A stretch of 64,000 nucleotides of DNA, taken from Vitrella brassicaformis CCMP3155 (taxonomy: Eukaryota; Protista; Chromerida). The translations under genes were made by a program, and so were the position numbers. Shown in pieces: positions 1 to 57,971 of the stretch. The stretch spans positions 25,342 through 89,341 of the forward strand of contig CDMY01000390.1 of the NCBI GenBank assembly GCA_001179505.1, in the 5' to 3' direction. The notes under the pieces are model-generated. The model had not been told where the DNA came from. It did no database searches and worked only from the letters and a program-made list of their open reading frames with translations. Each line of letters starts with the position of its first letter. The first letter of the stretch is position 1.

Positions 1-560
1 GGCCAACGGTGTAGGTATGGGCGCCATGCTGGGGACCGCATGTACAAGATGCCATCCCTGAGTGGCTTGGGTGTGGTGGACGTCACCATGCAGGGGGCTC
101 CCCGCTGGCTCACTCAGAACAAGAAGGGCATCAAGTCGCTACACATCATCTGTGACAAGGTGAGCGACAAGAAGGGCAATCAACGTGCGGCTCGACAAAC
201 GATCTTCATTCTTCTCTCCTTGCAGGATGACCCATTCGGCCGAGGTCCTGCGAATCTCTACCAAGTGAGCAGCGCCCTCTAGTTATCAGCAGGTGAGAGA
301 AGACACACAGCCCCTCTCCCGCCATAGTGCCTGCACTTCAAGCCCTGTGTGAGCACGTCTCAGCCAAGAGCATCACGTCGCTGACTGGCCGCATCGGAGG
401 GTGAGGGCGACGAAGAGGGCAGACGGAACGATAGTGCTGCGACCCAGCCAGGCCATCAAGAGAGCCAAGAGAAACGAGGAGCAGACGAACGAACGAAATG
501 CGCTACCTACTTCTGCCTCTTCGGTCTTGATGGGCTTTTTACGAGGCAGGACATATTGTT
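1..560 (+). pseudogene. 3' part of a degenerate paralog of the F-box-like family (copy A)
   Basis: MYKMPSLSGLG..KGIKSLHIICDK (40-159) resembles RKYDLPVLKELS..SGLSSLHF of copy B. AIVPALQALCEHVSAKSITSLTG (from 321) resembles AIDTALIVCLLVVTAKTLTSLSG of copy C. IVLRPSQAIKRAKR (~430-475) resembles VVLRPSQAKQKVKK at the end of copy C. These segments lie in different frames with stops at 280 and 294. Confidence 0.55.
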
Positions 561-868
561 GTACACTAACAGGTCCGACTGTTTTATCCGAATCGGTCCT
601 CACAGCGTTTTCTCTGCACCTTTGCGCCAATGCTGCATTTGTCTGTATTGGTCGCGCTGCTCGTACACGTCGCTTTGCTGCGTGTGTGTGGTTTTGCTGG
701 GTGGCATCCGTGTGTGTGCATTTGTGCGGTGTTTGTGCATTAATTTGTCCATTCGTGTGCGTGTGGGACGGACGGACGGACGGACGGATGGACCGACAGA
801 CAGACAAACCATTCAGCTGATCAAAACTGTCCTTCATCAGACACGCCGCGGGTGTGGGTGTCGGTCTG

Positions 869-3800: not shown

Positions 3801-3983
3801 AGCATAGCCCTCCCACTCGGAGTTGTCGTCTGAATCCACGCTGCTCTCGGAGAACAAGGAGCGCCGCTTGCGATCACGACCACCACCACCACCACCAACA
3901 CCACCAGCAGCGGCAGCGGCGGCGGATGAGGCGGCCATGGCGGCCTTGCGAACGGGACGAGCCGGTCGGTCCTTGACGTCCAT
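869..3983 (-). CDS. Lineage-specific multi-exon protein with N-terminal basic/low-complexity region, coiled segment, F-box-like motif and LRR-like C-terminal region (copy B)
   Basis: Exons traced with GT-AG junctions: MDVKDRPARP..DDVEME | DVGEVG..NEAKAK | AQQMLD..KHMQ | EVDRHYRVLTAMV.. | LEELPEALWM..LGYHTFMTSLSTINTHF (F-box-like) | GRVSQC..LEQLAATIETVELQG.. | ..WRVYGGDREAGRQVM..TGAQLLY*. Collinear with copy C. The junction near 2340 needs a very short intron or a frameshift. Confidence 0.7.
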
Positions 3984-4112
3984 CGTGACAAAGGGGGAAA
4001 GAGAGGAAAGAAATTGGGTCGTTCCATTTACCTTTTGTTGGCCAGGATGTCGCGAGCTATTGTCCTATTTCTCGCGTTCTTCTCGCTCGTTCTTCTCGCT
4101 CCTTCGGCAGCG

Positions 4113-21239: not shown

Positions 21240-21452
21240 GTGATCATGGACGGGATTGGGCATGGTTGTTGGTTGTCGTCTTTGTGTCGTGTTTTATCGG
21301 CTGTGGGTGCGAGTTGGTGCTTTGCGACCTTTATTGCATTTGTGGGATTTATGGGGACCCATATAGACATAATGTGCATTCACAAGGTCACTGTTGGCCG
21401 GCGTCGAGTCAATCATTCACGCGTCGATGCGTCGCTTCACCATAGCCATGCA

Positions 21453-22045
21453 GGCGTCTGTGTGTCTGTGTGTCGACTCGCCGGCCATGTGGTCCTGGAC
21501 TGAGTACAGCAACAAAATGCCGTCGTGACACTGACACACACCATAATCCGTGTGTGCGTCTGCGTGAGTCCGTCGAGTGGGAACGGGCCGACCTGTTTGT
21601 GTCCGATTCCGTAAGTGACGAGCAGTTTCTCTGCGAACGAGTTGGCGTATGTGTTGAGTTCCGTTCGTTCGTCGTGCTTGGCCCTCTTCTTGTCCTTGGC
21701 GAGTGAGTAGGGCAGCTTGGCCATGAGTGCGATGGCCAGTTGGTAGAAGGTCTTGCCGAGGCTTCCACAGGCGTGCTGCGTCTCCAGCCTGAACTTGAGC
21801 AGTCGCGTGTCGACGTCGTTGGCCTCGTCGTCGGTGAGCCATCCGTCGGGGTCACACAGCCAGATGGTCTCCCCCGCCTCGGCCGCCTCGCCGCGGTTGC
21901 AGCTCGTGGGGTCCAGGAACGGACTCGGGTAAGTGGACAGTGACCACTCCCTGCAAGCACCGTATCGCACGGTCACACACACAAAACAGACAGAGAAGGC
22001 GTGATGTGGGGATGAGTGAATGAATCAGGGTGTCGTGCTCGGTGT
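21453..22045 (-). pseudogene. Duplicated two-exon fragment (with introns) of the TPM/MOLO-1-like gene at 33857-35479
   Basis: Nearly identical to 34555-35155, including intron sequence, with scattered substitutions (e.g. ETIWL vs ETTWL, FRLET vs FRQET). Lacks the signal-peptide exon and the downstream exons. Confidence 0.85.
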
Positions 22046-33856: not shown

Positions 33857-35479
33857 TCATTCCTGAGCGATGAGGCCAGTCAGCGTGTCGGAGAGTGTCT
33901 TGGCGATGGCCTCCGTCTGCTGGGTGACTGCCTGGAGTGGTGTGGCAAGCTCTTTGGCATGGTCCTCGCCATACACAGCCACACCTTCATCGTACAGCGC
34001 TTGCTGCTGCACACACAGACAGACAGCGAGAGGGAGAGAGACAGGGATGAGTTTGTGAAGGTCTGTGTGTCTGATGTTCGCCACCATTTGGTGGAGTGCG
34101 TATGCGACACACGCGCCCACGAGCGCCAGAAACAGCACAATCAGCAAAATGTCCATCGTGTGGGACGAACCTGACAGTCACATCGTGTCATGCACACACA
34201 CGTCTGTCTATGTGTGTGTGTGTTTCATGAGATACCGCCGGGTGCGTGGTGTTTGGTCGGCAGGCGGTGTTCGATCAGCTCAATCGCCTCAAGCAGTCCA
34301 TCCTTGAGATTGTCGCCATTCAGCTGACACACACACACACACACACACACACATGGATGGATGGATGGATGAGTGTCTTCAGCTGACACACGTGAATGGC
34401 TCGTTCGATGTCTCGTTCGATGGTGAACTTGGCGGCCTCGTTGATGTAAGGCTCCAGCCCCTCACGCCAACGCACTACTGCACACACGATGGACACACAC
34501 ATCCACACACACGGTCATTGGTTGTGTGTCCATCCATCCATCCATCCATCCAATCGTCTGTGTGTGTGTGTGTCGACTCGCCGGCCATGTGGTCCTGGAC
34601 TGAGTACAGCAACAGAATGCCGTCGTGACACTGACACACACATAATCCGTGTGTGTGTCTGCGTGAGTCCGTCGAGTGGGAACGAGCCGACCTGTTTGTG
34701 TCCGATTCCGTAAGTGACGAGCAGTTTCTCTGCGAACGAGTTGGCGTAAGTGTTGAGTTCCGTTCGTTCGTCGTGCTTGGCCCTCTTCTTGTCCTTGGCG
34801 AGTGAGTAGGGCAGCTTGGCCATGAGTGCGATGGCCAGTTGGTAGAAGGTCTTGCCGAGGCTTCCACAGGCGTGCTGCGTCTCCTGTCTGAACTTGAGCA
34901 GTCGCGTGTCGACGTCGTTGGCCTCGTCGTCGGTGAGCCATCCGTCGGGGTCGCACAGCCAGGTGGTCTCGCCCGCCTCGGCCGCCTCGCCGCGGTTGCA
35001 GCTCGTGGGGTCCAGGAACGGACTCGGGTAAGTCGACAGGGACCACTCCCTGCAAGCCAAGCACCGTATCGCACACTCACACACACAAAACAGACAGACA
35101 AGGCGTGATGTGGGGATGAGTGAATGAGTGAATGAATCAGCGTGTCGTGTTTGGTGCTTCACTCACATGGTCGCATTCCTGTACATTTGCAAAGCAAACA
35201 CACGGACAACGAGACGCTCAATGACTGTGTGTGTCTCCTCTGATGTCTGCTCGCTCACTTCTTCTGAGTCGGTCCGCCGCTCTTGACGCCAGTCGGGTCG
35301 GCGTGTGAGAGAGGGCGGAAGGAAAACCGCACAGACTGGCTGTGGGTGTCTGCCGATGGCTGCACGTCGGTGAAGAATGCCTCGTCCAGCTGATAGGTCT
35401 GCTGGGCTGAAGCACCCCAGACGAGCAGGGCACAAACACTCACAATGACCAGCTTCATGGTCATCTTGCTCGCCCGCAC
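33857..35479 (-). CDS. TPM-domain (MOLO-1/TLP18.3-like) type I membrane protein
   Basis: Signal peptide MKLVIVSVCALLVWGASA; WSLSTYPSP..C..WLCDPDGWLTDDEA (MOLO-1-like); YGIGHKQ|CHDGILLLYS..|VVRWREGLE; TM helix ILLIVLFLALVGACVAYAL; short cytosolic tail. Confidence 0.8.
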
Positions 35480-39703: not shown

Positions 39704-41065
39704 CGTTCACGCGAGCCTGAGCACGTGCGAGGTCGTGGCCGTCGGTCGCTCCTTCTCTTCAGAGGTGCCTGGGTTTCTGTTTATGGCCTCCTGTTGGCCG
39801 AAAACGAAATAAATGCGGCGAGAAACTTTCGCGAGCTGAGACAAACCCCTGATTTGAACTCGCAGTCTTTTCACATTTTTTCGTCCGCGTTTGGCTTTGC
39901 AGCCTTGTTTCGTCCACATCTCCTGCGTATCTTTTTCTTTTCGGCTGGTTGTTGGCTTGTGTTGTCCGCCGCATCTCCCTCTACCCCTCCCAACTCGTCC
40001 GGATCCATCCGCCGCTTTTTCCTCCACGGCCGTGCCCCGGGCGAGGGCTCGCCTGGTGGTGCCGTTCCTTGTGCGGAGCGGCTGGCGACTGCCTGGCGCC
40101 TGCAGAGTGCGCACGCGCCTTCTTTTCGCACAAACCGCCTTCGTCAGGTGAATACATATGAGTGTGGCATCGTGCGTCCTGTCTCTCGGGTGTGGTGATG
40201 GTGTGGTGTGTGGATGATGTACAGGGATGAATGCATGGTGCATTTCGTTGTCATAAGTGTGCTCAGATGCCCCCTGTTGCCATGTCTGTGTGTGCAGATG
40301 AAGTGGTCATTTCTTTCATTCCCGTCTCCTTTTCTCAACACATTTCTGTGAAGGTTAGCGAGTGCCTCATTGAGATTGGTGTTCACGTGCGCGTCGGATT
40401 CCCTGTCTGCTGCTCTCCACAAACGAGATCCCTTGGTCCGACGAAATAAAAAGAGACAGATTGAAAATTTATCCAATTCATCTTTGTGTCTTGCAGCCCG
40501 CCGAGAAGTTTTCACGACGACGGCAACCTCCTGACCAACGAGGAGACCTGCGAATGGAAGCCACAAAGATAGTAGCGTGCGCGTGCGCTGCCAAAAACTC
40601 AGAATGCTCACTGCTTTGACCAGCAAAAAAATAAGCTGTGTCTTCTGAGCAGGCCAGTCGCCTCATGCGCCGCCACCAAGGGCTCTCTCTATATATCGTG
40701 ACGAACACTCGACATCTGTCCTTTTTGCCTTCTCTTTCAGCTCAGCGTGAGAAGTCTGGCGGCCGAGAAACCGGCATCGACAAAAAGATTGTTTCACGCC
40801 GAAGGAGTGGGCACTGCTGTTCGCACGGGTTCGCGCGCAGGTAAGTGATGGAGCGACTGACGAATGAGACTGACAGTGACCGCCGTGCCCATCTAATTGT
40901 TTGTGCAGAACGAGTCGGAAGAGGCCAGGCGTCGCGTCGCTGCGTCAAAAGCCGCCCAGAAGTTGCACGCGGCCAAGCTGTGGGAGATGAAGGCGAGGAT
41001 GGATGCCGGCGAGCAGGTGGATGCGGTCGCCTGGCTGTTGGAAAAGTGAAATCGAGGCAGTTCCC

Positions 41066-42502
41066 ATGATTGTCTCACACGCCGACGCCCTGAAGGCCCT
41101 GGGCCTGCAGACCTCCGCCACCCTCGCCGACGTCAAGACCCGGTTCCACGAGCGCTGCCTGGTAAGCGCACTCGCGAGTGGGGAAGGTCATGTTGATGGC
41201 AGATGCCCATTCGATGCACTTTTGCACTGGTGTGTGTGCAGAAGTGCCACCCCGATAAGGCTGGCTCTTCGGCAGCGTTGCGGAAGCTGCACGAGGCGTA
41301 CAAGGTCGCCTGCGCCACCCTCGTTAGCGGCACTGTGGCAGCGGTAAGCAGCCGCGAACGACCCCACTGCATGTGCTCTGTAGCAGACGTCTGTCTCATT
41401 GCGTTGTTGTCTGTCTGTCTGTCTGTCTGTCTGCCATCGTCAGGGCCGTCAGAAGGCGTCTTTCACGCCCGATGACTTAGACCGGCTTCGCGAACAGGTA
41501 AGTGATGGACCGACTCACGAATGAGACAGACAGACAGACAGTGAGTGACCGCCGTACCCGTCCTATTGCTTACATGTGCAGAGGGACGAGGCCAGCCGAA
41601 TCGCCGCCTCCTCACAAGCGGCATCGAAGGCGTGGCTCGCCAAGTTGCAAGAGGTGTGGGCGAGGGAGGCTGCTGGCGAGGAGGTGGATGAGGAGGCCTT
41701 TGTGGAGGAGGCCCGACGGGCGCCCAGGGCGGCAGCAGAGGAGGCCAAACGCAACTTTGACAAGGCCACCGCTGCCCGCCCCACCGAGGAGGAGCCCGCC
41801 GCCGCCAAGAAGGACATCCCCCCCGCCACGCGCACACGAGGCGCCAACCCACACACGGCCCCCGCCCAGCCACCACCGACCATGGCCACCACCACCAAGA
41901 GCGCCGCCACCGCCGCCAAGAAGCCGCCCGCCAAGCCCACCAAGGCAGTCGCCCAGCCACCGCCCACCAAGGCCACCAAACGCCCTGCCGCAGCCGCCAT
42001 GCAGAGACCTGCCCCCACGGTCCCCGCGGCAGCAACCAGGGTGTCGAAGCGGCAGCTGCAGCACCAGCAGGAGGCCAGGGCGAGGCGGCAGGAGTTGGAG
42101 AAGAGGAGCGAGGAGGCGGTCAAGCACCGCTTCCGCGTGTGAGTGGCTGGGTTGCGCGCGTCTGACGTGTTAGAGGAGAGACACCAGCTCTCCTCGGCTG
42201 TTGGCATGCTGTGTGTGTGTGCAGTATCGCTGCTTACATTTTATATTCCGATGTCTGTGTTGTTGGTTCCCTCGTCCAGTGCTCACCCTGAGCTCTCCCT
42301 TGTAAGTGTGTGGTCGAATGAGAGAAGAGGGTTCGTGCTGGCGGGCAATGACAGGATGTTGATTCGATACACTGCATGCGAGCTGTGTGTGTGTGTGCAG
42401 AAGTGCCACCCCGATAAGGGCGCGTCCGCGGCATCGTTCCAGCAGCTGCACGAGGCGTATGAAGTGGCCTGCGAGTACCTGGCTGAAGCCAGTGTGGCAA
42501 GG
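41066..42502 (+). CDS. DnaJ (J-domain) protein: J domain + helical/Ala-Pro-Thr-Lys linker + second HPD module
   Basis: MIVSHADALKALGLQTSATLADVKTRFHERCL|KCHPDKAGSSAALRKLHEAYKVA is a canonical J-domain pattern with intact HPD. GT-AG exons 41066-41161, 41242-41343, 41444-41497, 41581-~42136, then KCHPDKGASAASFQQLHEAYEVA (42400-42502). The last junction is uncertain. Confidence 0.65.
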
Positions 42503-42649
42503 GTAAGCAGCCGCGAACGAACCCACTGCACGTGCTCGTCTGGCAGACGTCTGTCTAACTCTGTGCTGTTGTGAGTTATCTCAGGTTCGAGTGAGTTTCA
42601 CGTCCGACTCCCTGTGCGCGCGACCCGCCGCCAAACCCATGCCCGTCTC

Positions 42650-43370
42650 ACACCGACGCCCTCTCTGTGCTGGGCCTCCGCACTGCTGCCACTGCTGCTG
42701 ACATCAAAACACGGTACCGCGAGCGCTGCCTGGTAAGCGGACTCGCGAGTGAGGGGGCAGATGCCCATTCGATGCACTTTTGCACTGCTGTGTGTGCAGA
42801 AGTGCCACCCCGATAAGGATGGCTCTTCGGCAGCGTTCCAGCAGCTGCGCGAGGCGTACAAGGTCGCCTGCGCCACCCTCGTTAGCGGCACTGTGGAAGG
42901 GGTGAGCAGCCGCGAACGAACTCACTGCATGTGCTCTGTAGCAGACGTCTGTCTGTCTGTCTGTCTGTCTGTCATCGTCAGGGCCGTCAGAAGACCTTCA
43001 TCACGCCCGATGACTTAGACCGGCTTCGCGCACAGGTAAGTGATGGACCGACTCACGAATGAGACAGACAGACAGACAGAGAGACAGTGAGTGACCGCCG
43101 TGCCCATCTTCTTACTCACATGTGCAGAGGGACGAGGCCAGCCGAATCGCCGCCGCCTCACAAGCGGCATCGATGGTGTGGCTCGCCAAGTTCCAGGAGA
43201 GGTGGGCGAGGGAAGCTGCCGGCGAGGAGGTGCATAAAGAGACCTGGGGGGAGGAGGCCCGGCTGGCGGCCGAGGCGGCGGCAGAGGAGGCCAAACGGCA
43301 CTTCGACGAGGCCACGACGGCCCACACGACGCACGGCACCACGCCCGCCGACGCTTCCTCTTTTGGGCGT
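42650..43370 (+). pseudogene. Second J-domain unit (J1-J2-L-H), possibly incomplete
   Basis: DALSVLGLRTAATAADIKTRYRERCL|KCHPDKDGSSAAFQQLREAYKVA|GRQKTFITPDDLDRLRAQ|RDEASRIAA..; no clear start codon. Confidence 0.6.
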
Positions 43371-46360
43371 CACTGTACAGCACAGCATAGCATACGGTAA
43401 GGGTAGGGGAGCAGGTCATATGCAGCATTGAACCATCCCTTCATGTCATCTCTTGCCGTTGGCTGTCCTTCCTCCACTCAGGCAACGAGTGGAGCCATAG
43501 CGTCAGCTGGCGACACCCATATCACATCCATTGCTTCTGTCAGTCACCGCAGAGGCTGCTGCTGCTCGACCGACCTCAGCAACATCATCTCCACCTACCC
43601 TCTCCCGCACCCGCAACTCCATCTGGACAGCAGTTCGACCCGCAGACGCATCTCGCTCAGCGCCCCACGGGCCCTCCACCCCGCCGCCGACACTCAAGCG
43701 CCCTGCCGCAGCTGCCAAGCAGAGACCTGCCCCCACGGTCCCCGCGGCAGCAACCAGGGTGTCGAAGCGGCAGCACCAGCAGGAGGNNNNNNNNNNNNNN
43801 NNNNNNNNNNNNNNNNNNNNNNNNNNNNNNNNNNNNNNNNNNNNNNNNNNNNNNNNNNNNNNNNNNNNNNNNNNNNNNNNNNNNNNNNNNNNNNNNNNNN
43901 NNNNNNNNNNNNNNNNNNNNNNNNNNNNNNNNNNNNNNNNNNNNNNNNNNNNNNNNNNNNNNNNNNNNNNNNNNNNNNNNNNNNNNNNNNNNNNNNNNNN
44001 NNNNNNNNNNNNNNNNNNNNNNNNNNNNNNNNNNNNNNNNNNNNNNNNNNNNNNNNNNNNNNNNNNNNNNNNNNNNNNNNNNNNNNGTGTGCAGATGAAG
44101 TGGTGATTTCTTTCTTTCTCATTCCTGTCTCCTTTTCTCAACACATTTCTGTGAAGAATAGCGAGTGCCTCATTGAGATTGGTGTTCACGTGCGCGTCGG
44201 ATTCCCTGTCTGCTGCTCTCCACAAACGAGATCCCTTGGTCCGACGAAAAAAAGCGAGAAAAAAGAGACAGATTGAAAATTTATCCAATTCATCTTTGTG
44301 TCTTGAGCAGGCCGAGAAGTTTTCACGACGACGACAACCTCCTGACCAACGAGGAGACCTGCGTATGGAAGCCACAAAGATAGTAGCGTGCACACGTGCA
44401 CTGTCAAAAACTCAGAATGCTCACTGCTTTGATCAGCGGAAAAATAAGCTGTGTCTTCTGAGTAGGCAAGTCGCCTCATGCGCCGCCACCAAGGGCTCTC
44501 TCTATATATCGTGACGAACACTCGACATCTGTCCTTTTTGCCTTCTCTTTCAGCTCAGCGAGAGAGGTCCTTCCCTTTCCCGGCATCGGCAGAAATATTT
44601 TTTCACGCCCGAGGAGTGGGCACTGCTGTTAGCACGGGTTCGCGCGCAGGTAAGTGATGGACCAACTGACAAATGAGACAGACAGTGACCGCTGTGCCCA
44701 TCTAATTGCTTGTGCAGAGCGAGTCGGAAGAGGCGCCGCCGCCTCACAAGCGGCATCGATGGCGTGGCTCGCCAAGTTCCAAGAGATGTGGGCGAGGGAA
44801 GCTGCCGGTGAGGAGGTGGACAAGGATGCGTGGCTGAAGGAGGCCCATCGGGCGGCCAGGGCGGCAGCAGAGGAGGCCAAACGGAACTTCGACAAGACCA
44901 CCAAGGCGAACACGAAAGGCGCCAACAGCAAGGACGACACCCCCACTGCCCGCCCCACCAAGGAGGAGCCCACCCCGGCACTCGCCCTGCTTCCGCCGCC
45001 GCCAAGCAGAGACCTGCCCCCACGGTCCCCAAAGCAGCAACCAGGGTGTCGGAGCGGCAGCAGCAGCACCAGCAGGAGGCGAAGGCGAGGCGGCAGGAGC
45101 TCGAGAAGAGGAGCGAGGAGGCGGCCAAGCACCGCTTCCGAGTCTGAGTGGCTGTGTCCGGCAGCGGTGCGCGTGTCTGACCGCGCGCCGCTGCCCGACA
45201 CATCCCTGCCCCCATCCCCATGCTGCCCGTGGTCTGTCCGTGGTCGTCCATTCGTGTGTCCGTTCGGTGTGGTAGTTCGTGTTTCCCCGGTGGGTGTGGG
45301 TGTGGCGACGTGCTCTTCAGCCATGGCAGGCCTCTCGACGTCACCCACACCACAAGACGTCACCATTTACCCAGTGGCCTTCCAAGACGGCCGGTCCAGC
45401 GAGAACAACACCATCATCCGGGTCAACCACTCGGTGTGGTCATTCGACCTGCTGGTGCACAGGACATGCGCTTCACTGTGGGAGGGGTAAGCAGCCGCGA
45501 ACGACCCCACTGCATGTGCTCTGTAGCAGACGTCTGTCTGTCTGTCTGTCTGTCATCGTCAGGGCCGTCAGAAGGCGTTTTTCACGCCCGATGACTTAGA
45601 CCGGCTTCGCGAACAGGTAAGTGATGGACCGACTCACGAATGAGACAGACAGACAGACAGTGAGTGACCGCCGTGCCCATCTTTTTACTCACATGTGCAG
45701 AGGGACGAGGCCAGCCGAATCGCCGCCGCCTCACAAGCGGCATCGATGGTGTGGCTCGCCAAGTTCCAGGAGAGGTGGGCGAGGGAAGCTGCGGGAGAGG
45801 AGGTGGATAAAGAGACCTGGGGGGAGGAGGCCCGGCTGGCGGCCGAGGCGGCGGCAGAGGAGGCCAAACGGCACTTCGACGAGGCCACGACGGCCCACAC
45901 GACGCACGGCACCACGCCCGCCGACGCTTCCTCTTTTGGGCGTCACTGTACAGCACAGCATAGCATACGGTAAGGGTAGGGGAGCAGGTCATATGCAGCA
46001 TTGAACCATCCCTTCATGTCATCTCTTGCCGTTGGCTGTCCTTCCTCCACTCAGGCAACGAGTGGAGCCATAGCGTCAGCTGGCGACACCCATATCACAT
46101 CCATTGCTTCTGTCAGTCACCGCAGAGGCTGCTGCTGCTCGACCGACCTCAGCAACATCATCTCCACCTACCCTCTCCCGCACCCGCAACTCCATCTGGA
46201 CAGCAGTTCGACCCGCAGACGCATCTCGCTCAGCGCCCCACGGGCCCTCCACCCCGCCGCCGACACTCAAGCGCCCTGCCGCAGCTGCCAAGCAGAGACC
46301 TGCCCCCACGGTCCCCGCGGCAGCAACCAGGGTGTCGAAGCGGCAGCACCAGCAGGAGGC
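42895..46360 (+). repeat. Near-identical direct repeat, ~42895-43786 and ~45480-46360
   Basis: Long stretches are identical with few substitutions (e.g. EVHKETW vs EVDKETW). The first copy is cut by the gap. Confidence 0.9.
43787..44086. other. Assembly gap (300 N) inside the repeat array
   Basis: N run. Confidence 0.95.
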
Positions 46361-48265
46361 GAAGGCGAGGCGGTAGGAGTTAGAGGAGAGGAGCGAGAAG
46401 GCGGCCAAGCACCGCTTCCGCGTGTGAGTGGTCCGTGTCCGTCAGCGATCTGGGCAGAAGAGAGACACCAGCTCTCCTCGGCTGTTGGCTTGCTGCGTGT
46501 GTGCAGTATCGCTGCTTACATTTTATATTTTGACGGCTGTGTTGTTGGTTCCCTCGTCCAGTGCTCACTCTGAGCTCTCCCTTGTAAGTGTGCGGTCGAA
46601 TGAGAGCAATTTGAATGAGAGAAGAGGCTTCGTGCTGGCGGGCAATGACAGGATGTTGATTCGATACATTGCATGCGAGCTGTGTGTGTGTGTGCAGAAG
46701 TGCCACCCCGATAAGGTCGCGTCCGCCGCGGCGTTCCAGCAGCTTCGCGAGGCCTATGAGGTGGCCTACGAGTACGTGGCGAAAGCCACTGTGGCAGCGG
46801 TAAGCAGCCGCGAACGAACCCACTGCATGTGCTCGTCTGGCAGACAACTGTCTCACTCTGTGCTGTTGTGACAACTTGTGAGTTATCTCAGGCCAGAGTG
46901 AGATTCATCTCCGATGAGTGGAACCGACTCATCGTCACGGTGAGTAGCGGACCGACTGACGAATGAGACAGACAGACAGACAGACAGTGAGTGACCGCCG
47001 TGCCCATCTTATTAATTGTGCAGTCGGTCTACCCCTGTCTGTCTGTCGGTCTTTTTAGCTCAACGACAGGCTCGCCCGCCGCACCAAGGAGCTGGCCATG
47101 CAGTACCAACAGATGACCAACACGGAGCCTCAGGTGGGTGGGTGGGTGGTTGAGTGAGTGTCACACAGACAAATGCGACAAGGGTGGACGGCCTCACTGG
47201 CTCACTCGTGAGTACATCTGTGTGTGTGTGTGAGCGTGTGTGCAGGAGGAGGATGGGGAGGCGGATGATGGGCAGGTGCCCGAGTGGCTTGATGAGCCCC
47301 TCCCACATTACACGTCGCTGCCGGTAGGCAAGGCACCCCACAATCCACACGCCGACGTCTGGCACCCATGTGTGTGTGTTGTGCACATCTTGGTTGTTTC
47401 TACCAGCTGGCCTCCCAGCCGCCGCAGCAGCCCCAAAGCTTCTTTCACTAAGAAGTCGATGCCCGTCCGCCGCGTCCGCCTGTTTGTCCGTCCACTGTTG
47501 CCTGTCCGTCCTCACCTGCGTCTACTCGACTGCATGCCTGCCCGACAACGTGACTCCCCGACTGCTCCAGCCACGCCGCCAGCCGCCCTTCTTCCCTCTG
47601 AGCCCCCTAAGGGTGGCTCTTCGGCGGCGTTTCGAGAGCTGCACGAGGCCTATGAGGTGGCCTGCGCGAGCCTGATTGGCGGCACTGTAGGGGTAAGAAG
47701 CCGCGAACGAACGCACTCCATGTGCTAGTCTCATTGCGTTGTTGTGTGTCTGTCTGTCTGTGTGTCTGTCTGTCATCGTCAGGGCCGTCAGAAGGTGTTC
47801 GTCACGGAGTTAGCACGGGTTCCCGCGCAGGTAAGTGATGGACCAACTGACGAATGAGACAGACAGTGACCGCCGTACCCGTCCTATTGCTAACATGTGC
47901 AGAGGGAAGAGGGCAAGCGAAGGGCAGCGGGGTCGCGAGCTGCGGGTAAGGCCCACTTGGAGAAGCTGCGGGAGATGTGGGCGAGGCAAGATGCGGGTGA
48001 GGAGGTGGATGAGGATTCCTGGCTGGAGGAGGCCTGGCTGGCGGCCGAGGCTGCAGCAGCGGAGGCCGAGCGCAACTTCGACAAGACCACCGCTGCCGCC
48101 ACACCGCTGTCCGTGGTCCGTCCATTCGTGCGTGAGTTCGGTGTTGGAGTTCGTGTTTCCCCGGTGGCTGTGGGTGTGGCTGAGGTGGTTGGGCATTTCC
48201 GGCAGGACCTGACCATGAGCCAGCTGTCGCGTGCGGTGAGGAAGGGGGGTGGGGGGGGGGGGCGT

Positions 48266-48672
48266 GGAGAGACACCAGCTCTCCTTGGCATGCTGCGTGT
48301 GTGCAGCATCGCTGCTTACATTTTATATTCCGATGGCTGTGTTGTGGGTTCCGTCGTGCTCACTTTGATGTGGATTAGGCAGACTGAATGGGTGTTGGGG
48401 GCTGGACGGTTGCATGGTGTCGGTGGCCACGGCCAGGGCATGACTGACGGGCGCTGTGAGGTGCGTGCAGACCGATGACATCTAGATGAATCTCTGTTGG
48501 CCAAGAGAGTCCATTGACGGATAAGTGTATAGTGCACACACGCATAGCATCCGGGGGAGGGGGTCCCCTCACTCACGCAACACTCAAAACAGAACGTGAT
48601 TACACCGAAACACCTTGGCGCCAAAACGACTGAAACGTCAGTCACGCGAAGCTGCTGCCTATCCACACTATG
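48266..48672 (+). repeat. X segment; inverted copy at ~54312-54723 on the other side of BBS7
   Basis: E.g. gatgacatctagatgaatctctgttggcc (48474) is the reverse complement of ggccaacagagattcatctagatgtcatc (~54478); similarity runs ~400 bp. Confidence 0.9.
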
Positions 48673-48811
48673 CTGACGTCCCCCGACCTTGGCTGGGTGA
48701 GTGAAGGCCTTGATGTATGTCTGTCTGTTCTGTCTGTCTATGTACACACACTCATGGAGGCAGTGTGTCGATGCTCTACTCACCTACACATGCGCGCATC
48801 TGTCGGTGTAC

Positions 48812-51800
48812 CTATCTGATTGGCTCCTGGAAGAAACTGATCAGCACCTCCAGGCTGCACACACAGACAAAACAGAACGGAACAACCGCAATGTGTCGCT
48901 GTATGTTTGTATGTATGTACTTGTAGTTGTTGAGTATGGCGGTGAGCTCTTCCAGCCGCTCGCGGCTCACAGAGGGGTAGCCCTTCAGCTGCCATTTGCT
49001 CACATACCTAATGGACGGACAGATCGATGCATGGGACGGACACATATACGAGGGCAGCCTTGTCTCTGTCTGTCTGTGTGTGAGACTCGGTGTGTGCGTA
49101 CGTGTCATGGACGAGTCCATGCAGGAATGAAAGCCGCCGCGGCTGCTCCTCGTACTCCCGCTTGATCGAATCTACATAGACACGAAATGCACCAAATCAT
49201 TCCATGGACACACACATGGACACACACGAGCGTACCAGCATTGTCAATTACGTGTCTGAGGTCGGGTGCGAGGAAGTCGACCGTCCCCTCCTGCTGCTGT
49301 ATCTCCCTAAGTGGCTCCACCAGCCGCACCTGGGTGGCCAACGCGTGCTGCACCGACAGCCTACGGTCCACCAGAGACAACACGTGGGGCAAACTGGCAT
49401 CCTGGACGGACCAGACAGACAGACAGACAGAGATGGTGCACGTCTCGTTGATTGTTGCTCATGTGAATGTATCCACCTGCACGTCGGTGGTGATGGCGAG
49501 GTGGATTTTGCGGTTTGTGGCCTCGCTGGACAGCACCTCCTGCACACACCGATGCATGCAGGTGTGCACAGCCGCATGATTGGTGGTGGTCTTGGTGGCT
49601 CCCTCCCTCTCTCTGGCACCTTGAGAATCCTCATGGTGGCCACACAGTCTGTGCGAAACACCGCCGAACCCTTAGAATACCTACATGAGCACAAACGCAA
49701 CACACGTGCGTGAGTACATCGACAGACAGCCGGCCAACCTGGCCTCCATGTGTGTGCCCAGGTAGGTCGACCGGAAGACGGCGCACTCCTGCACACATGA
49801 GGGAGGGACGGAGAGAGGGATGGAGGGATGGGAGCTTCCTGTTGGCCATATGCTCACCTCGTCCTGGTTGGGTCTTGCTGGGAGGTCGTTGACGCACGCA
49901 CCAAGCCATCCGTGCACTTCACCCAAACTAAACGAACCTGCTCACATACATCCATCCAAACAATCATCATTAAGATGAAGCAAGTGTGTGTCGGTTTGCG
50001 CATGCCCACCAGTGATCCGCAGCTCATTCAGAGGCAAGTCCTTCGGCAACTGTAGGCAGTAGAGACCTGCCTGCCTCCCTGCCTGTATGCGTGTGTGTGG
50101 CCGGCAACCCGTGCGCACCTCTTGCACTCGTTCGTGGAGGCTAAGAGGCTTGACGGGGATGTCAATCAACGGACACACGCGAAGGGACGTCTACACACAC
50201 ATACACACATACACACAGCACAGCCACGTGGACAGATAGACAGCAGCTCACACAATGGATTGTATACCTTTGGCACGACGAAGCACGACATGGTGCCGTA
50301 TCGGCCTGATGACACACACGATGATACAACCATCCATCTGCGTTGTGTTTCCAAGACAGCGAGTACCCTCAACGGTGCGGAATCGGACCTCCAAGCGTGT
50401 CGGATCGCCCTGGTGCACACATGTCATCCATCAGTTGGTCACGTATGTGTGCGCATGCATCGCTCTCTCCTCCTGCCTGTTTTGTTGTGCTGACCTGACA
50501 CCGCATTGTGGCGAGCAGTGGACTAGCAGAGTCACCGTCAGATCGAGTCACTACTGGGGCTGCATGTGGGAATGACATCACATCACAGCGGGTATGAGAT
50601 GGATCTTACTCTGTTCAGTGGATCCCTCCGAGCAGTCGAGCAGGTCGATGGCCACGTCGCTGCGAAGCACCACCAACTCCTGCATGTGTGTGTGGGGGGG
50701 CAAGCGTCCCCACGTGAAGGCACTCCTTCTGTGCGTCCGACGGTGCATGGATACGTACGATTGGGTCGGGTGAGTCGACGGTGAGGAGGTAACACGCCTC
50801 GTCCGACATCAAACGAAACCGATGCGATATCTGACACACACGCACGCGCAGAGAGAGAGAGGAGAGAGCGAGAGAGAGATTACGCGACCCCATTCTGTCT
50901 GTGTCTGCCTGGCTGTGGGCTGACGGGTGCGTGGGAAACCTTTGTGGGCACGGCGGCAGCAATGACGCTCTTGGACAGATCCTGATACCTGAACCAAGAC
51001 ATCAGCAAAGACAGATTGTGCATCACACCTTGGTTCATCTACCCATCATACCTCTTCCGTGCGTGTTCGAGCTTCTCTCTCAGTGCCGCGACCTCCTTCT
51101 CCAGCGATTTCACCTTCTTGGCCTGACAAACAAACCGGTCGGTACGCACAGCGGAAACAAACTACTGGTCGTGCGGTCACGTACCCGCGCCTCCGGGCTC
51201 TCATCGGGTCTGGTCTGCGCCTCGCCGCCCTCGACCTCACCTGCGCAACATCAGCCAGGCACACAGACATGAGGTGAAGAGCTTGCTGTGTCGGGCTAGT
51301 GGCCACGGTGTGTACCCGATGCCGCTGCTGCTGCTGCCCCGGTGGTGTCTGCTGCCGACGCATCTGGAGACACCATCACACATGACACACAGGGGTGCTC
51401 TGTGTGTGTGTGTGTGTGTGTGCATGGTAGGTGGGATGCATGTGTGTGACAGCTGCTGGCTGGGTGATCGACCTGGAGTGAGTGCGACCACCCGCCCGCT
51501 GTACGTTGACACTATCACCTCCAGATAATCTGGGAGGGAAAATGTCACTCTCACACGTGTGCGTGAGTGTCAGATGCAATGTGCGTGTGTGTGTACCTAC
51601 CTCCCGTAGTGACGTATCCCGCGTCGAGTCCCCTGATGCTCTCGTGAAGGCACACCTCATACGCCAACACAGGCGACCCACTCAGCACCTCACGCCATAT
51701 CTGTGTAACAAGTACACCCACCAACAGATACCGAAGACTCTCTCAAATGGTTGCTCGTTGGCTGACCTCTACAGTGCCGTCATCCCGGCCGATCAGCACA

Positions 51801-53284
51801 TCGGGCTCCCCCGACTGTCGATGAGCAATTTCACACACCCATGGGCCGCCGATTTGTTTGTATGTCTGTGTATGTGGTGGTTGGCAGCCGTTCGTCATAC
51901 CCCAGTGAAGTCGGCACCCATGATATTGACAACACCAGCCCTGACAAACAAAACCAACACGCACACCACATCAAGGCCAAGACCGGTGTATGTATCTGTC
52001 TTCCCGCCTGGCTGGCTGGCTGCCTGCCAGTCCCGCCTACCGCCGTTTTCTTTTGGCCGGCTGGTCCTCATCCACCTCTATCAGGCACCCCTCCCGCATC
52101 ACATTATCCACACTGACCACAGAAGGACCGACAAAAGTGACACACACAGAGCGCCATACATTCGTCCTCGTCCACCTTTATGCCTCCTCGCGCTCACGTG
52201 TCGATGAGTGCCAGCCCGGCCCTGCCAGTCTCGGTGCCATAGAGCAGCTCGATCGGCAGCTGAGAGCCGGGCACACGCTCGCGGAGGAAACCTGTGAATG
52301 AATGGCCAGCAGATGGATGCATTGACGGAGACAAGATGCACCGTTTCGGTTTGGTCACGTACCGAGTGCGGTGACAGGTCCATCGACGGGGTACTGGTGG
52401 TACAGTTGCTCCCCACTGTACACTCGAATGTGGCGGTCCTGAGGGCAAACAAGAGAATGACGGCATAACAGTCGAGCGACCCTGTGTGGCCCGACTACCG
52501 ACCTGACAGGCAACAATCGAGCACAGGGGCGTCCTGCAAGTGACAGGCGGAGAGGGAGAGAGATGTGGCAGCCATGTGTAAAGGTATCCAGAAGTGTAAG
52601 TATGTGTGTGTGTGTAGGTTACTGACTGCGGTCCGGCCACAGCGGCGCACTGGAGGTCGTTGATGCGGTCGGGGGACATGACGAACCCAGCGTCCTTGCA
52701 GCTGTCGTATATCGTCAACAAGTAATCCTACACACACACACACAGCCACACCCACACCCCCACACACCACAGCAGAGATAGAGAGAAGCCAACAGATTCA
52801 CATGTACGCCACACACAAGTGCATTGTGAGTTAGCTCAGCTCACCCCGCCGGCCCAAATCATGGCTTCGTGCACGACGAGCGATGAGATGGTCTCAGTGA
52901 GGTTGGTCTTGAACTTGAGGAACTCCTTGCCCTTCCGCGTGAAGCCCCATATCGTCTGACCCGCACCCACAAACAGCTTGTCCCGCCCACACTGCAGCGC
53001 CACACGGCTGACGGGGCGGCCCAGGGGAGGCGACCGCCACTCCACCTCCGCTGCGCCCTTCTTCATAAAGAACACCGTCAGCACACCGGAATCGTCACCA
53101 ATCGCAACTGAGTGCAACATTAGACCAAACAATGCCGCGCAGATCTCTCCTCACACACCATGCTGTCTGTTCTGACATGCTGACCTTTCTGTTGTCTCTT
53201 CTTTCCGAATGGCAGCACTGCGAGTGTGTTGCGTGCGATGCTCCCTCCCGAAGTGTGCAACAGATCTACCACATACAGCTGCAT
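48812..53284 (-). CDS. BBS7: Bardet-Biedl syndrome 7 protein (BBSome subunit), multi-exon
   Basis: MQLYVVDLLHT..KKRQQK|VAIGDDSGVLTVFFMKKG..IWGFTRKGKEFLKFKTNLTETI; DRINDL; VLIGRDDGTVEV; EVIVSTYSGRVVALT; VKPLSLHERV; SEATNRKIHL; C-terminal NNYN|LEVLISFFQEPIR*. All collinear with recalled BBS7. Confidence 0.93.
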
Positions 53285-53619
53285 TCTGATGAATGAATGC
53301 CGTCAGAACCACTGAGGCGAGATAGAGTCACTCCGCGGTGCGATTTTTCACAGATCTCGATGCCACTAGACGACTCTCGAGCTTGGCTCGAAGCCACTGG
53401 GCAAGGAGAAGGAGGGCATCACCCAAGCTCACGCCTTGCCTCCGGCTGCGTTCGGGTGCTCCATGAAACCGCAGCTCCTGCTTCCCGAAAGAACCGGACG
53501 GTCATGAGAATGGCTGACATTCCCACGAATGAAACGGAGGAGGGGAAAGCCGCCCGCCCAAGCCGCAGAAACGGCGCACGACGAACTGATGGCGCGATGA
53601 ATTGGTTCATTGTTTTGAC

Positions 53620-54260
53620 GTAGCGAGCCGCCGTCGCCGACATCAAAGCACGGTTCCACGAGCGCTGCCTGGTAAGCGCACTGGCGAGTGAGGAAGGTCA
53701 TGTTGATGGCAGATACCCATTCGATGCACTTTTGCATTGCTGTGTGTGCAGAAGTGCCACCCCGATAAGGGCGGCTCTTCGGCGGCGTTCCGAGAGCTGT
53801 ATGAGGCCTACAAAGTCGCCTGCGGACACCTGATTGGCGGCAGTGTGGGAGGGGTAAGCAGCCGAACGAACTCACTGCATGTGCTGGTCTCATTGCGTTG
53901 TTGTCTGTCTGTCTGTCTGTCTATCATCGTCAGGGCCGTCAGAAGGTGTTCGTCACGGAGTTAGAACAGCTTCGCGCGCAGGTAAGTGATGGACCAATTG
54001 ACGAATGAGGCAGACAGACAGACAGACCGCCGTGCTCATCAGATTAATTGTGCAGAACGAAGAGGCCAAGCGAAAGGCAGCGCCAGCACGAGCCGCGGGG
54101 AAGGAGCACTTGGAGAAGCTGCGCGAGATGTGCGCGAGGGAAGATGCCGGCGAGGAGCTGGATAAGACGGCCTGCCTGAAGGAGGCCCATCGGGCGGACA
54201 GGGCGGCAGCAGAGGAGGCCAAACGCACCTTCGACAAGGCCACCGCTGCCGGCACACGAG
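53620..54260 (+). pseudogene. J-domain unit (partial J1-J2-L-H) directly upstream of, and divergent from, BBS7
   Basis: ADIKARFHERCL|KCHPDKGGSSAAFRELYEAYKVA|GRQKVFVTELEQLRAQ|NEEAKRKAA..EEAKRTFDKAT; most similar to the unit at 47605-48100. Confidence 0.65.
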
Positions 54261-54311
54261 GCGCCATACATACAGCGACATGTATGTATGTGTGGACGCC
54301 GTACGTTTAGA

Positions 54312-57300
54312 GTATGTGTGGAGAGGCAGCAGCTTCACGTGACTGACGTTTCAGTCGTTTTGGCGCGAAAGTTGTCGGTGTAATCACGTTCTGTTCTTAG
54401 TGCTGCGTAAGTGGGGGGACCCCCTCCCCCGGATGCTATGCGTGTGTGCATACACTTATCCGTCAATGGACTCTCTCGGCCAACAGAGATTCATCTAGAT
54501 GTCATCGGTCTGCACGCCCCTCACAGCGCCCGTCAGTCATGCCCTGGCTGTAGCCACCGACGCCAGGCAAGCGTCCAGCCCCCACCTCCCATTCAGTCTG
54601 CCTAATCCACATCAATGTGAGCACGACGGAACTAACAACACAGACATCGGAATATAAAATGTAAGCAGCGATGCTGCGCGCACACGCAGCATGCCAACGG
54701 CCGAGGAGAGCTGGTGTCTCTCCTCTAACACGTCAGACGCGCCCACCGCTGCCGAACCCAGCCACTCACACGCGGAAGCGGTGCTTGGCCGCCTCCTCAC
54801 TCCTCTTCTGGAGCTCCTGCCGCCGCGCCCTCACCTCCTGCTGGTGCTGCCGCTTCGACAGCCTCGTTGCTGCCGCGGGGACCGTGGGGGCGGCTCTCTG
54901 CTTGGCGGCGGCGGCGGCAGAGCGTTTGTGTGTGTGGCGTGCTGGTTGTGCGGCGGGATGGATTGTGAGGTCTGACTGACCTTTCCTCCCAGCCACCGTC
55001 CTCCTCCTCCTTTTGTTGGCGGACTTCGACCAGAACCAATTCTGCCCGAAGCTGAGCACACATCACACACACGTACGTCATTGGTATGCCGTCACTTGGC
55101 CGGTTTGTCCGCGTGGCTTCTTGTTGCTGGCGTGCAGACCTCATTCGGCGACACTGCGAGATGGCCTTACGACACCACCAGGCGGAAAGGGGAGTGCCAC
55201 TGCGTAGGATGCCAAGGAATCTCTCAACTGCCTGAGGCAAAGGCAACAACAGAAACAGGCAGGGGCGGGTGAATGTGTGTGTGGCGTGCATCATGGCCGA
55301 CGGGCAAGTGTGTTACCTGGTGTTCTTCGCTGCCGCGAAAGGATTGGTCGACGACTTCTCTCTCCCAAGAAGCCACGCGCAACATCTGTGTCTGCACGAA
55401 TGCATTCATTCACCGGCACACAGCAGCGGCAGCACCACGATGGATGGATGAACACTCACTCTTTTGCCATAGGTGTATGCAGTGACCTGTTCCGCGAGTT
55501 CCAGCAGTAGTCTCTGATCAGGAAGATCCTCACTGGGCGAGCGACCTGACCACAGGCAGCCACACACAGACACAGACAGAGAGACACAGAGAGAGAGGGA
55601 TGAGTCGGACGGCCAGCCTTCTCCCTTTCTCCCCGTGTGTGCTCTTGTGTGTGGTTGTGTGCCTCACCGAGTGTGTTTTCGTCGTGTCGATCATGATCGT
55701 TGTCTGCACCCTCATCCTTCTGGACTGGCAGGTGACGCTCACGACCCGCTGCCCCGGCGGATAACAAGAAGCTACTGCTACCCTCCTCCTCTGTGTCGCT
55801 CTCCGTTCCGTCCACTTGCCGCACGCCCGACACACCCACACCCACACCAAAGTCCGCACCAGAGCCGGTACTGCTCCCTGGCAGACCTACATGCACACGG
55901 ATGGGGTCATGCGGATGGATGTGCCTCGTGTAAGTGTGGGTGCGTATTTGTGTGTGTCTGTGTGTGTGTGTGTGTGTGTGTCACGTACCATCAAAGGGCA
56001 GCCGTGACGGTCGTCTTCTTCTTGGCGGGGGCGGCGGCAGAGCGTTTTCACCCGGCCGGGTGGGCTTGGTCGGTGGTGGCTGGGCGGGTATGGGGCGGCC
56101 TTCTTGGTGGCGCCTTCGTGGTGGCGTGTGGCGGTCTCGCCCCTCTCACCGGCAGCGGTGCTGGTGAGCAGCGTCGGCGGGCGTGGTGCCGTGCGTCGTG
56201 TGGGCCGTCGTGGTCTCGTCGAAGTGCCGTTTGGCCTCCTCTGCCGCCGCCTCGGCCGCCAGCCGGGCCTCCTCCCCCCAGGTCTNNNNNNNNNNNNNNN
56301 NNNNNNNNNNNNNNNNNNNNNNNNNNNNNNNNNNNNNNNNNNNNNNNNNNNNNNNNNNNNNNNNNNNNNNNNNNNNNNNNNNNNNNNNNNNNNNNNNNNN
56401 NNNNNNNNNNNNNNNNNNNNNNNNNNNNNNNNNNNNNNNNNNNNNNNNNNNNNNNNNNNNNNNNNNNNNNNNNNNNNNNNNNNNNNNNNNNNNNNNNNNN
56501 NNNNNNNNNNNNNNNNNNNNNNNNNNNNNNNNNNNNNNNNNNNNNNNNNNNNNNNNNNNNNNNNNNNNNNNNNNNNNNNNNNNNNCGCATCGATGCCGCT
56601 TGTGAGGCGGCGGCGCCTCTTCCGACTCGCTCTGCACAAGCAATTAGATGGGCACAGCGGTCACTGTCTGTCTCATTTGTCAGTTGGTCCATCACTTACC
56701 TGCGCGCGAACCCGTGCTAACAGCAGTGCCCACTCCTCGGGCGTGAAAAAATATTTCTGCCGATGCCGGGAAAGGGAAGGACCTCTCTCGCTGAGCTGAA
56801 AGAGAAGGCAAAAAGGACAGATGTCGAGTGTTCGTCACGATATATAGAGAGAGCCCTTGGTGGCGGCGCATGAGGCGACTTGCCTACTCAGAAGACACAG
56901 CTTATTTTTCCGCTGATCAAAGCAGTGAGCATTCTGAGTTTTTGACAGTGCACGTGTGCACGCTACTATCTTTGTGGCTTCCATACGCAGGTCTCCTCGT
57001 TGGTCAGGAGGTTGTCGTCGTCGTGAAAACTTCTCGGCCTGCTCAAGACACAAAGATGAATTGGATAAATTTTCAATCTGTCTCTTTTTTCTCGCTTTTT
57101 TTCGTCGGACCAAGGGATCTCGTTTGTGGAGAGCAGCAGACAGGGAATCCGACGCGCACGTGAACACCAATCTCAATGAGGCACTCGCTATTCTTCACAG
57201 AAATGTGTTGAGAAAAGGAGACAGGAATGAGAAAGAAAGAAATCACCACTTCATCTGCACACACAGACATGGCAATAGGAGGCATCTGAGCACACCCATG

Positions 57301-57820
57301 ACAACGAAATGCACCATGCATTCATCCCTGTCATCCACACACCACACCATCACCACACCCGAGAGACAGGACGCACGATGCCACACTCATATGTATTCAC
57401 CTGACGAAGGCGGTTTGTGCGAAAAGAAGGCGCGTGCGCACTCTGCAGGCGCCAGGCAGTCGCCAGCCGCTCCGCACAAGGAACGGCACCACCAGGCGAG
57501 CCCTCGCCCGGGGCACGGCCGTGGAGGAAAAAAGTGGCGGATGGATCCGGACGAGTTGGGAGGGGTAGAGGGAGATGCGGCGGACAACACAAGCCAACAA
57601 CCAGCCGAAAAGAAACAGATACGAAGGAGATGTGGCCGAAATAAGGCTGCAAAGCCAAACGCGGACCAAAAATGCGGAAAATGAGACTGCGAGTTCAAAT
57701 CAGGGGTTTGTCTCAGCTCGCGAAAATTCTCGCCGCATTTGAATTTCGTTTTCTGCGGCCAACAGGAGGCCACAGGCAGAGACCCAGGCACCTCTGAAGA
57801 GAAAGAGCGACCGACGGCCA
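54312..57820 (-). repeat. Right (inverted) arm of the DnaJ-module array: U-L-H-gap-H-unique exons-T-X on the minus strand
   Basis: 56586-57260 is the reverse complement of 44087-44765 with almost no differences; 57260-57820 matches 39736-40300; 56170-56285 is inverted H; 54770-54920 is inverted T; 54312-54723 is inverted X. Confidence 0.9.
56286..56585. other. Assembly gap (300 N) inside the inverted arm
   Basis: N run. Confidence 0.95.
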
Positions 57821-57971
57821 TGAGATAGCGCGGAAAGGTCACGCTCAGACGAGCAGAGAGCAAAGAGGAGGCCCGTATCCTATTCATTCATCGCATTTGC
57901 CCTCCTGTGTGCTGTACTGTCAGGTCGGCGCGTCATTCATTCATCTCTCGGCTTGATGGCGTCTGGCGACT

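Follow-up and report, generated by a model that had tools for sequence, protein, structure and literature searches.

A probable tandem and inverted segmental-duplication cluster of J-domain genes around BBS7 in Vitrella brassicaformis

Foldback (FB) transposons of Drosophila have long inverted terminal regions on both sides of a central segment, and their internally repetitive arms consist of short subrepeats (10-31 bp) set in arrays; these transposons are multi-copy, with target-site duplications (TSDs) on either side. Ampliconic palindromes (e.g. those holding multi-copy genes on the human X and Y chromosomes) likewise present one family in inverted arms around a unique spacer, with exchange between the copies and a proneness to mis-assembly. 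Accelerated exon evolution, in which introns are more conserved than exons, is known from snake-venom phospholipase A2 and conotoxin genes, and J proteins (DnaJ/Hsp40), whose type III members join an N-terminal J domain to an unrelated tail, act as Hsp70 co-chaperones through their HPD loop. These systems bear comparison with a locus at positions 39736-57820 of a 64,000-nt stretch (C390:25342-89341, hereafter the window, to which coordinates refer unless a scaffold is named) of the Vitrella brassicaformis CCMP3155 assembly, where J-domain gene units surround the cilium gene BBS7. Chromerids such as Vitrella are used to infer the origin of apicomplexan multigene families.

Our analysis indicates that the locus is probably a cluster of lineage-specific paralogous J-domain genes and gene fragments, lying in both orientations around the conserved single-copy BBS7 and built by segmental duplication, unequal crossing-over and gene conversion. 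This reading draws on the structure of the units, the local confinement of the family, the genomic dispersal of a module termed U together with the common flanks of its copies at this locus, the mosaic make-up of individual units and the inverted pairs found within one contig. All units were mapped by tblastn with four exon peptides. The basic unit, as read in the copy termed J-a, has four phase-0 exons (E1-E4) separated by GT-AG introns (I1-I3); E1 and E2 encode a J domain with its HPD motif, E3 follows, and E4 encodes a charged and then Pro/Thr/Ala-rich tail. The forward units are:

40764-41046, plus strand: tail termed unit 0, with a long-form E3, a conserved intron and a short E4-like open reading frame (ORF; stop 41044-41046), without J-domain exons
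41066-42170, plus strand: J-a, read from the DNA, with E1 at 41066-41161 (ATG), E2 at 41242-41343 (HPD), E3 at 41444-41497 and E4 from 41582 to about 42150
42401-42499, plus strand: J2, an orphan HPD exon resembling E2, lying downstream of E4 of J-a (DnaJ 16.2 bits)
42646-43786, plus strand: J-b, with E1 at 42646-42732, E2 at 42800-42895 (HPD), E3 at 42982-43035, E4a at 43128-43331 and E4b at 43573-43785, entering gap 1
44717-45190, plus strand: unit 3, the E4 of a U-linked unit located by tblastn, without J-domain exons
45474-46442, plus strand: unit 4, a mosaic, with E3 at 45563-45616, E4a at 45701-45904 and E4b at 46146-46442
46698-46799, plus strand: J2', a second orphan E2-like exon with HPD
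47603-48097, plus strand: unit 5, with an E2 remnant lacking HPD (47603-47689), E3 and E4a (47903-48097)
53627-54250, plus strand: unit 6, with the 3' half of E1 (53627-53671, with a stop closing it on the upstream side), E2 at 53752-53847 (HPD at 53758), E3 and E4a (54059-54250)

The E1 and E2 exons of J-a read as helices I-III of a J domain (RFHERCL-KCHPDK...EAYKV), sharing with the type III J-domain-only proteins the succession of helix II, HPD loop and helix III as well as the N-terminal position of the domain ahead of an unrelated tail, and KCHPDK, which holds the HPD signature of J-domain proteins, is invariant across six E2 exons. Single exons match the Pfam DnaJ family (PF00226) at 16.2 and 14.1 bits over profile positions 25-52, none reaching the cut-off of 27.8 because the intron just before the KCHPDK codons splits the domain. 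A profile built from the six E2 exons matched only J domains in the PDB, weakly (E 0.05-0.24) and aligned at the HPD loop, namely 1FAF (polyomavirus T antigen), 2CTR (DNAJB9) and 2OCH (dnj-12); searched singly with phmmer, E1 and E2 found no match there. As points of difference, the Vitrella units have no glycine-rich or zinc-finger region, their tail is without detectable relatives and an intron interrupts the domain. Intact units would make Hsp70 co-chaperones with diversifying tails.

Outside the window the family is almost absent. Genome-wide searches, which covered the 72,700,666 bp and 1064 scaffolds of the assembly, found the J modules, the X module lying downstream of E4 and the inner modules only at C390 65-83 kb and on C1004, an unplaced 6.4-kb scaffold (1-6430), where two sets stand head to head and are 74-97% identical to the modules of the window:

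C1004, minus strand: full unit, with E1 at 1816-1727, E2 at 1647-1552 and E4 at 1313-657
C1004 4805-6124, plus strand: second set, with E3, E4 and X

Five or six units align throughout, and their nearest relatives change along their length. Unit 4 is 98-99% J-a-like across I2-E3 and 99% J-b-like from I3 on (I3-E4a), so that the switch of nearest relative at the E3/I3 boundary makes it a clear mosaic. In J-b, E1 is 80% identical to the C1004 copy versus 71% to J-a, and I1-E2 is 93-94% J-a-like. A super-unit of the order U-tail-J-J2-J is moreover present twice, offset by 3.8-4.8 kb. Neighbouring paralogues with a common exon-intron structure and mosaic members are what a tandem or segmental gene family looks like, and the suggestion of the initial annotation that the array is a recombination-driven gene family was borne out by this common structure, by unit 4 (45474-46442) and by the duplicated super-unit.

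Exons and introns of the units differ in their rate of change. The regions compared were 41066-41800, 42610-43360, 45474-45930, 47560-48120 and 53600-54280, together with C1004 1100-1850. Among the four full units, 37% of exon columns are variable versus 19% of intron columns (Fisher p = 5e-6), and pairwise the three short introns of the paralogues are 85-99% identical and the exons 68-93%. Over 122-154 aligned codons there are zero stops, and the exon indels measure 6 and 12 nt. Pairwise intron distance is 0.06-0.23, exon dN 0.16-0.30 and dS 0.26-0.58, giving dN/dS of 0.46-0.84. This pattern supports the view that the exons are translated and fast-diverging between constrained or homogenised introns, and does not prove positive selection on them. 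In the higher identity of the introns, the open frames and the exon indels in multiples of three, the cluster resembles the families with accelerated exon evolution. Unlike in those families, dN/dS stays below 1, dS too exceeds intron divergence and the product is a J-domain protein instead of a secreted toxin; with dN/dS below 1 and dS above intron divergence, intron constraint or patchy gene conversion accounts for the data as well as positive selection does. The well-conserved introns would at the same time supply homology for exchange between units.

Further observations concern the expression of the units. At 42150-42175, 45130-45153, 46420-46442 and, on the minus strand, 54757-54780, a donor-like GTGAGT overlaps the end of E4 (...KHRFRV and stop), and sequence resembling an intron follows; in two units an HPD exon comes after this donor-like end. 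To judge from the sequence, translation of the tail may end at this stop, or the tail may be spliced to a second half-J-domain. In J-b the upstream ATG of J-a is kept, but a 1-nt deletion (within 42620-42660) puts it out of frame, which marks either a pseudogene or a draft base-call error. Intron 2 has a (GUCU)n run at its 3' end and intron 3 a complementary (GACA)n run at its 5' end (41380-41570), with such runs in all aligned units, and in the predicted fold the two pair and loop out the 54-nt E3 (minimum free energy -69.2 kcal/mol, z = -2.0); pairing of this kind, if it forms as modelled, could favour E3 skipping or back-splicing. An Rfam scan of 38-60 kb at gathering thresholds returned no RNA family.

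Around BBS7 these units and the repeats U and X are set out in inverted order, the remaining features being:

39724-40763, plus strand: U1, a 5'-truncated fragment of a dispersed non-coding repeat, with family homology over 39783-40763
44087-44761, plus strand: U2, comprising the 3' half of U, a long-form E3 and the beginning of E4, with 100% identity to 56588-57262 in reverse complement
56588-57832, minus strand: U3, reversed, joined to a long-form E3 and the beginning of E4; its identity is 92% with U1 and, over 675 nt, 100% with U2
48266-48668, plus strand: X(+), downstream of E4, the left copy of the inner inverted repeat, found as an inverted match
54316-54723, minus strand: X(-), the right copy of the inner inverted repeat, found as an inverted match, 91% identical to X(+) and in the same contig
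54757-54951, minus strand: E4b of the reversed unit, found by tblastn, with 75% amino-acid identity to residues 124-190 of J-a E4
56005-56285, minus strand: E4a of the reversed unit, of J-b/unit-4 type (99%) over 56170-56285, its frame closing after about 45 codons
43787-44086: gap 1, 300 N, bounded by coding E4b on the left (43786) and by position 555 of U on the right (44087), the two edges not being continuous
56286-56585: gap 2, 300 N, interrupting E4 on the minus strand, with about 63 nt (21 codons) absent if the edges are colinear with the paralogues
48800-53150, minus strand: BBS7, multi-exon, identified with Pfam, ends approximate, with a propeller exon at 53132-52839, the platform near 49700 and the hairpin at 49458-49108

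The matching ends that the initial annotation had noted are present: TGGCCGTCGGTCGCT starts at 39736 and its reverse complement ends at 57820. From there 39736-40925 matches 57820-56615 in inverted orientation at 92.2% over 1217 nt, similarity fading by 39724 and 57832 on the outer side, and the inner pair, 48266-48668 with 54723-54316, reaches 91% over 412 nt. Further inverted matches join 41987-42275 to 54915-54623 (88%), both 43240-43355 and 45813-45928 to 56285-56170 (99% over 116 nt each) and 44087-44761 to 57262-56588 (100% over 675 nt). These matches are far beyond chance. The inverted arms that had been described from them stand at their outer and inner ends, but as scaffolded the arms are unequal (8.9 kb on the left, 3.5 kb on the right) and not colinear; about 1958 of the 3209 sequenced bases of the right arm (61%, as summed inverted matches over sequenced bases) have an inverted counterpart, and 54925-56169 is unique in the genome. 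The same annotation placed DnaJ modules in both arms. The left arm, a series of forward gene units, does carry them, and the HPD exons of the locus (n=5, the one of unit 6 in the spacer included) all lie on the plus strand, whereas the right arm is a single reversed U-type unit without J-domain exons, which on the minus strand runs through U3, a long-form E3, the start of E4, gap 2, E4a, 1.1 kb of unique sequence, E4b and X.

The spacer of about 5.6 kb (48669-54315) holds BBS7 and one forward J unit (unit 6), as had been proposed, BBS7 being on the minus strand. Its propeller and hairpin domains exceed their Pfam cut-offs (Beta-prop_BBS7, 80.4 bits against 27, at 53132-52839; BBS7_hp, 46.4 bits against 27.8, at 49458-49108, both on the minus strand), the platform domain gives a weak match near 49700 on the same strand, and the domains follow one another in N-to-C order on one strand. 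It is possible, as far as the arrangement of the repeats can tell, that the BBS7 interval inverts by recombination between inverted copies with the gene left intact; an inversion would spare BBS7 because the gene ends inside the spacer, its hairpin exon lying at 49458-49108 and X(+) ending at 48668. Cruciform extrusion, by contrast, is not expected across a spacer of more than 5 kb, and the suggestion that the arms could form one is on this general ground not plausible.

The module U, at the outer ends of the arms, has a history of its own. It has 56 matches on at least 33 scaffolds, at 74-83% identity, with no reading frame conserved above the DNA level, and away from this locus the similarity extends on the upstream side into longer repeats (at least 4 kb), which contain tandem units of 650 nt; ORFs of one such longer U-family locus contained no Pfam domain. 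The longer repeat, of which at least 4 kb are common to its loci at about 87% identity, with 650-nt tandem duplications, can be seen for example at C283:65-70 kb, C748:268-272 kb and C304:73-77 kb. U1 and U3 are 92-94% identical and start at a common position inside the repeat family; upstream they share 47-59 nt that are absent from the family (39724-39782 at U1, common to U1 and U3 only), and downstream both run into J-gene exons. The same truncation point, the common non-family flanks and the J exons therefore make U1 and U3 copies of one segment and not independent insertions. Of the 5' half of U the assembly contains only two copies.

On this basis a most likely course of events can be proposed. 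A J-domain gene beside BBS7 would have been amplified via unequal exchange; the E1-E2 part of one unit would then have been replaced by a truncated fragment of the dispersed repeat U; a block of several units with this U fragment would have been duplicated, tandemly or inverted; and ongoing conversion between units would have produced the mosaics.

How the duplicated blocks are ordered depends on the assembly. The CCMP3155 genome is a velvet assembly (k=75) of short reads, for which SSPACE did the scaffolding, GapFiller and IMAGE the gap filling and REAPR the breaking (Woo et al. 2015, PMC4501334). The window, intron-rich eukaryotic DNA of about 58% G+C, contains three 300-N runs (16988-17287, 43787-44086 and 56286-56585), of which the last two delimit contig A (left of gap 1), contig B (44087-56285) and contig C (right of gap 2). 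The warning that two gaps fall inside the array was apt, the orientation of the 12-kb contig between them not being secure. All four contig ends at these gaps sit in repeats, and the edges of gap 2 are of differing paralogue type, the right one 100% of U2/unit-3 type and the left one 99% of J-b/unit-4 type. The perfect 675-nt identity begins in contig B with its first base (44087) and in contig C reaches up to the third base (56588), and a scripted check confirmed that the reverse complement of contig B has the start of contig C as its suffix over 675 nt. Judging from the published assembly methods, gap fillers that extended both contig ends with the same reads would give such a duplicated stretch, and U2 may be the same physical copy as U3. 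If contig B is flipped, gap 2 closes through the 675-nt overlap, two U copies suffice and the super-unit pairs, direct as scaffolded, turn into inverted and colinear ones (39736/56843, 41413/54840, 41974/54108, 42814/52764 and 45649/52106 in rebuilt coordinates). We lean towards this order, under which BBS7 and unit 6 would lie between the 5-6 kb arms of an imperfect but colinear palindrome; the order as scaffolded, with two tandem super-units and one reversed chimeric unit, is nevertheless quite possible.

Other ways of settling the order were tried and discarded. Colinearity of E4 across gap 2 was rejected as proof of the present scaffold, and does not discriminate because the contig ends flank the most conserved E4 segment in every unit, so that any correctly oriented ends look colinear. 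Placing the reverse complement of contig C before contig B strands contig A and inverts the remaining scaffold, flipping contig B alone being simpler. C1004 lacks U and its ends fail to overlap the contig ends, and it was rejected as filler for either gap. Elsewhere in the window, 21446-22023 and 34546-35127 are direct copies of a 583-nt repeat, 95.9% identical and 13 kb from each other, which has no relation to the J cluster.

The 675-nt identity also bears on whether the locus is dynamic. If the identical inverted repeats (U2/U3, at least 675 nt) truly flank the 12-kb BBS7 segment, this would be a naturally invertible segment present in both orientations in the culture, hence the assembly break. 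Its inverted identity of 100%, set against 74-99% for all other paralogue pairs, the coherent junctions in both orientations of contig B and the gaps at both repeat copies are what such a segment would leave; a single U copy and a mis-oriented contig explain the same data more simply, however, and only two U 5' halves exist in the assembly, so that we regard a naturally invertible segment as unlikely. The wider proposal of a real invertible BBS7 cassette, kept in both orientations within a J family whose conserved introns would act as recombination tracts shuffling the fast-diverging exons, we judge decidedly unlikely.

Alternatively, the inverted arm could be unreal, its right-hand part having come from repeat-derived reads misplaced in scaffolding or gap filling. 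Such an artefact would fit the position of all four contig ends in repeated modules, the perfect identity bounded by contig ends, the use of velvet at k=75 with GapFiller and IMAGE (PMC4501334) and the chimeric reversed unit with its two paralogue types across gap 2. Yet the elements at 54316-56285 share an unbroken contig with BBS7 and with the forward units at 44087-48668 and 53627-54250, and since X(-), E4b and E4a of the reversed unit all lie in it, the presence of this unit beside BBS7 is as secure as that contig. The X(+)/X(-) pair and the pair 45813-45928/56285-56170 each lie inside this one contig, and both U1(+)/U3(-) and X(+)/X(-) are inverted under either orientation of contig B. 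Moreover, the reversed X, E4b and E4a are 75-91% identical to the forward copies and accompany a unique 1.25-kb insert, which argues against duplicated reads, and U3 differs from U1 by 8% and runs on into the unique right flank. We therefore hold a wholly artefactual arm to be very unlikely.

The initial annotation had likened the locus to Foldback or composite elements. A mobile element whose inverted arms, from U to X, mobilise a BBS7-containing segment would account for the inverted outer modules with matching ends and for the membership of U in a dispersed repeat family, and the long inverted arms around a central segment, internally repetitive, are indeed those of FB transposons. The likeness fails in every test that was run. 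Genome-wide, no further copy of the composite with shared termini occurs, and beyond this locus the J modules are present only on C1004. No TSD was found at 39736/57820 or 39724/57832, the longest direct repeat within 5 nt of these boundaries being 3 nt, and Pfam scans gave no transposase-like domain in ORFs of the arms and no domain of any kind in those of the flanks (38.2-39.5 kb and 58-59.9 kb), in agreement with what the annotation itself had reported. The arms are made not of short tandem subrepeats but of spliced gene units, each about 1 kb or longer and divided into phase-0 exons by GT-AG introns, and their end module is a truncated repeat copied together with its flanks. As for a composite transposon of two complete transposase-bearing elements, U is truncated, favours no reading frame and contains no Pfam domain. 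With no other copies, no TSD and no transposase, a mobile element is rejected as extremely unlikely.

With ampliconic palindromes the duplicated J-domain gene cluster shares one family in inverted arms around a unique spacer, signs of exchange between copies and a proneness to mis-assembly. It is unlike them in its short arms (3.5-9 kb) of 74-92% identity, versus > 99.9%, which are partly degenerate and, as scaffolded, not colinear, and arm-to-arm conversion in Vitrella would count as demonstrated only if the perfect identity over 675 nt is genuine. Several points weigh against reading the locus as a family of J-domain genes. Only J-a has an ATG and every exon in frame, several units are truncated or without J-domain exons, and much of the array may be pseudogenic. 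The 223-aa ORF at 41502-42170, which covers most of J-a E4, matched no protein at E <= 1e-3, not even a predicted Vitrella protein, in a word search of a set of 5.8 billion proteins whose candidates were only 123-390 aa long. Intron conservation could stem from a genome-specific constraint on introns and not from diversifying selection on exons, and introns 2 and 3 hold (GTCT)n/(GACA)n runs that are easily aligned. Finally, how contigs A, B and C are oriented to one another depends on scaffolding with short reads.

Taken as a whole, the locus is probably a tandem and inverted segmental-duplication gene cluster, that is, one of a known kind, and our analysis points to a probable error in how scaffold C390 of the Vitrella reference was put together. 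It also indicates that a foldback geometry arises here from paralogous genes and not from a mobile element. Should transcript data agree, the cluster would offer a tractable chromerid example of exon diversification by recombination, and, if the invertible BBS7 cassette were true after all, a free-living relative of apicomplexans would possess a eukaryotic diversification locus guided by introns.

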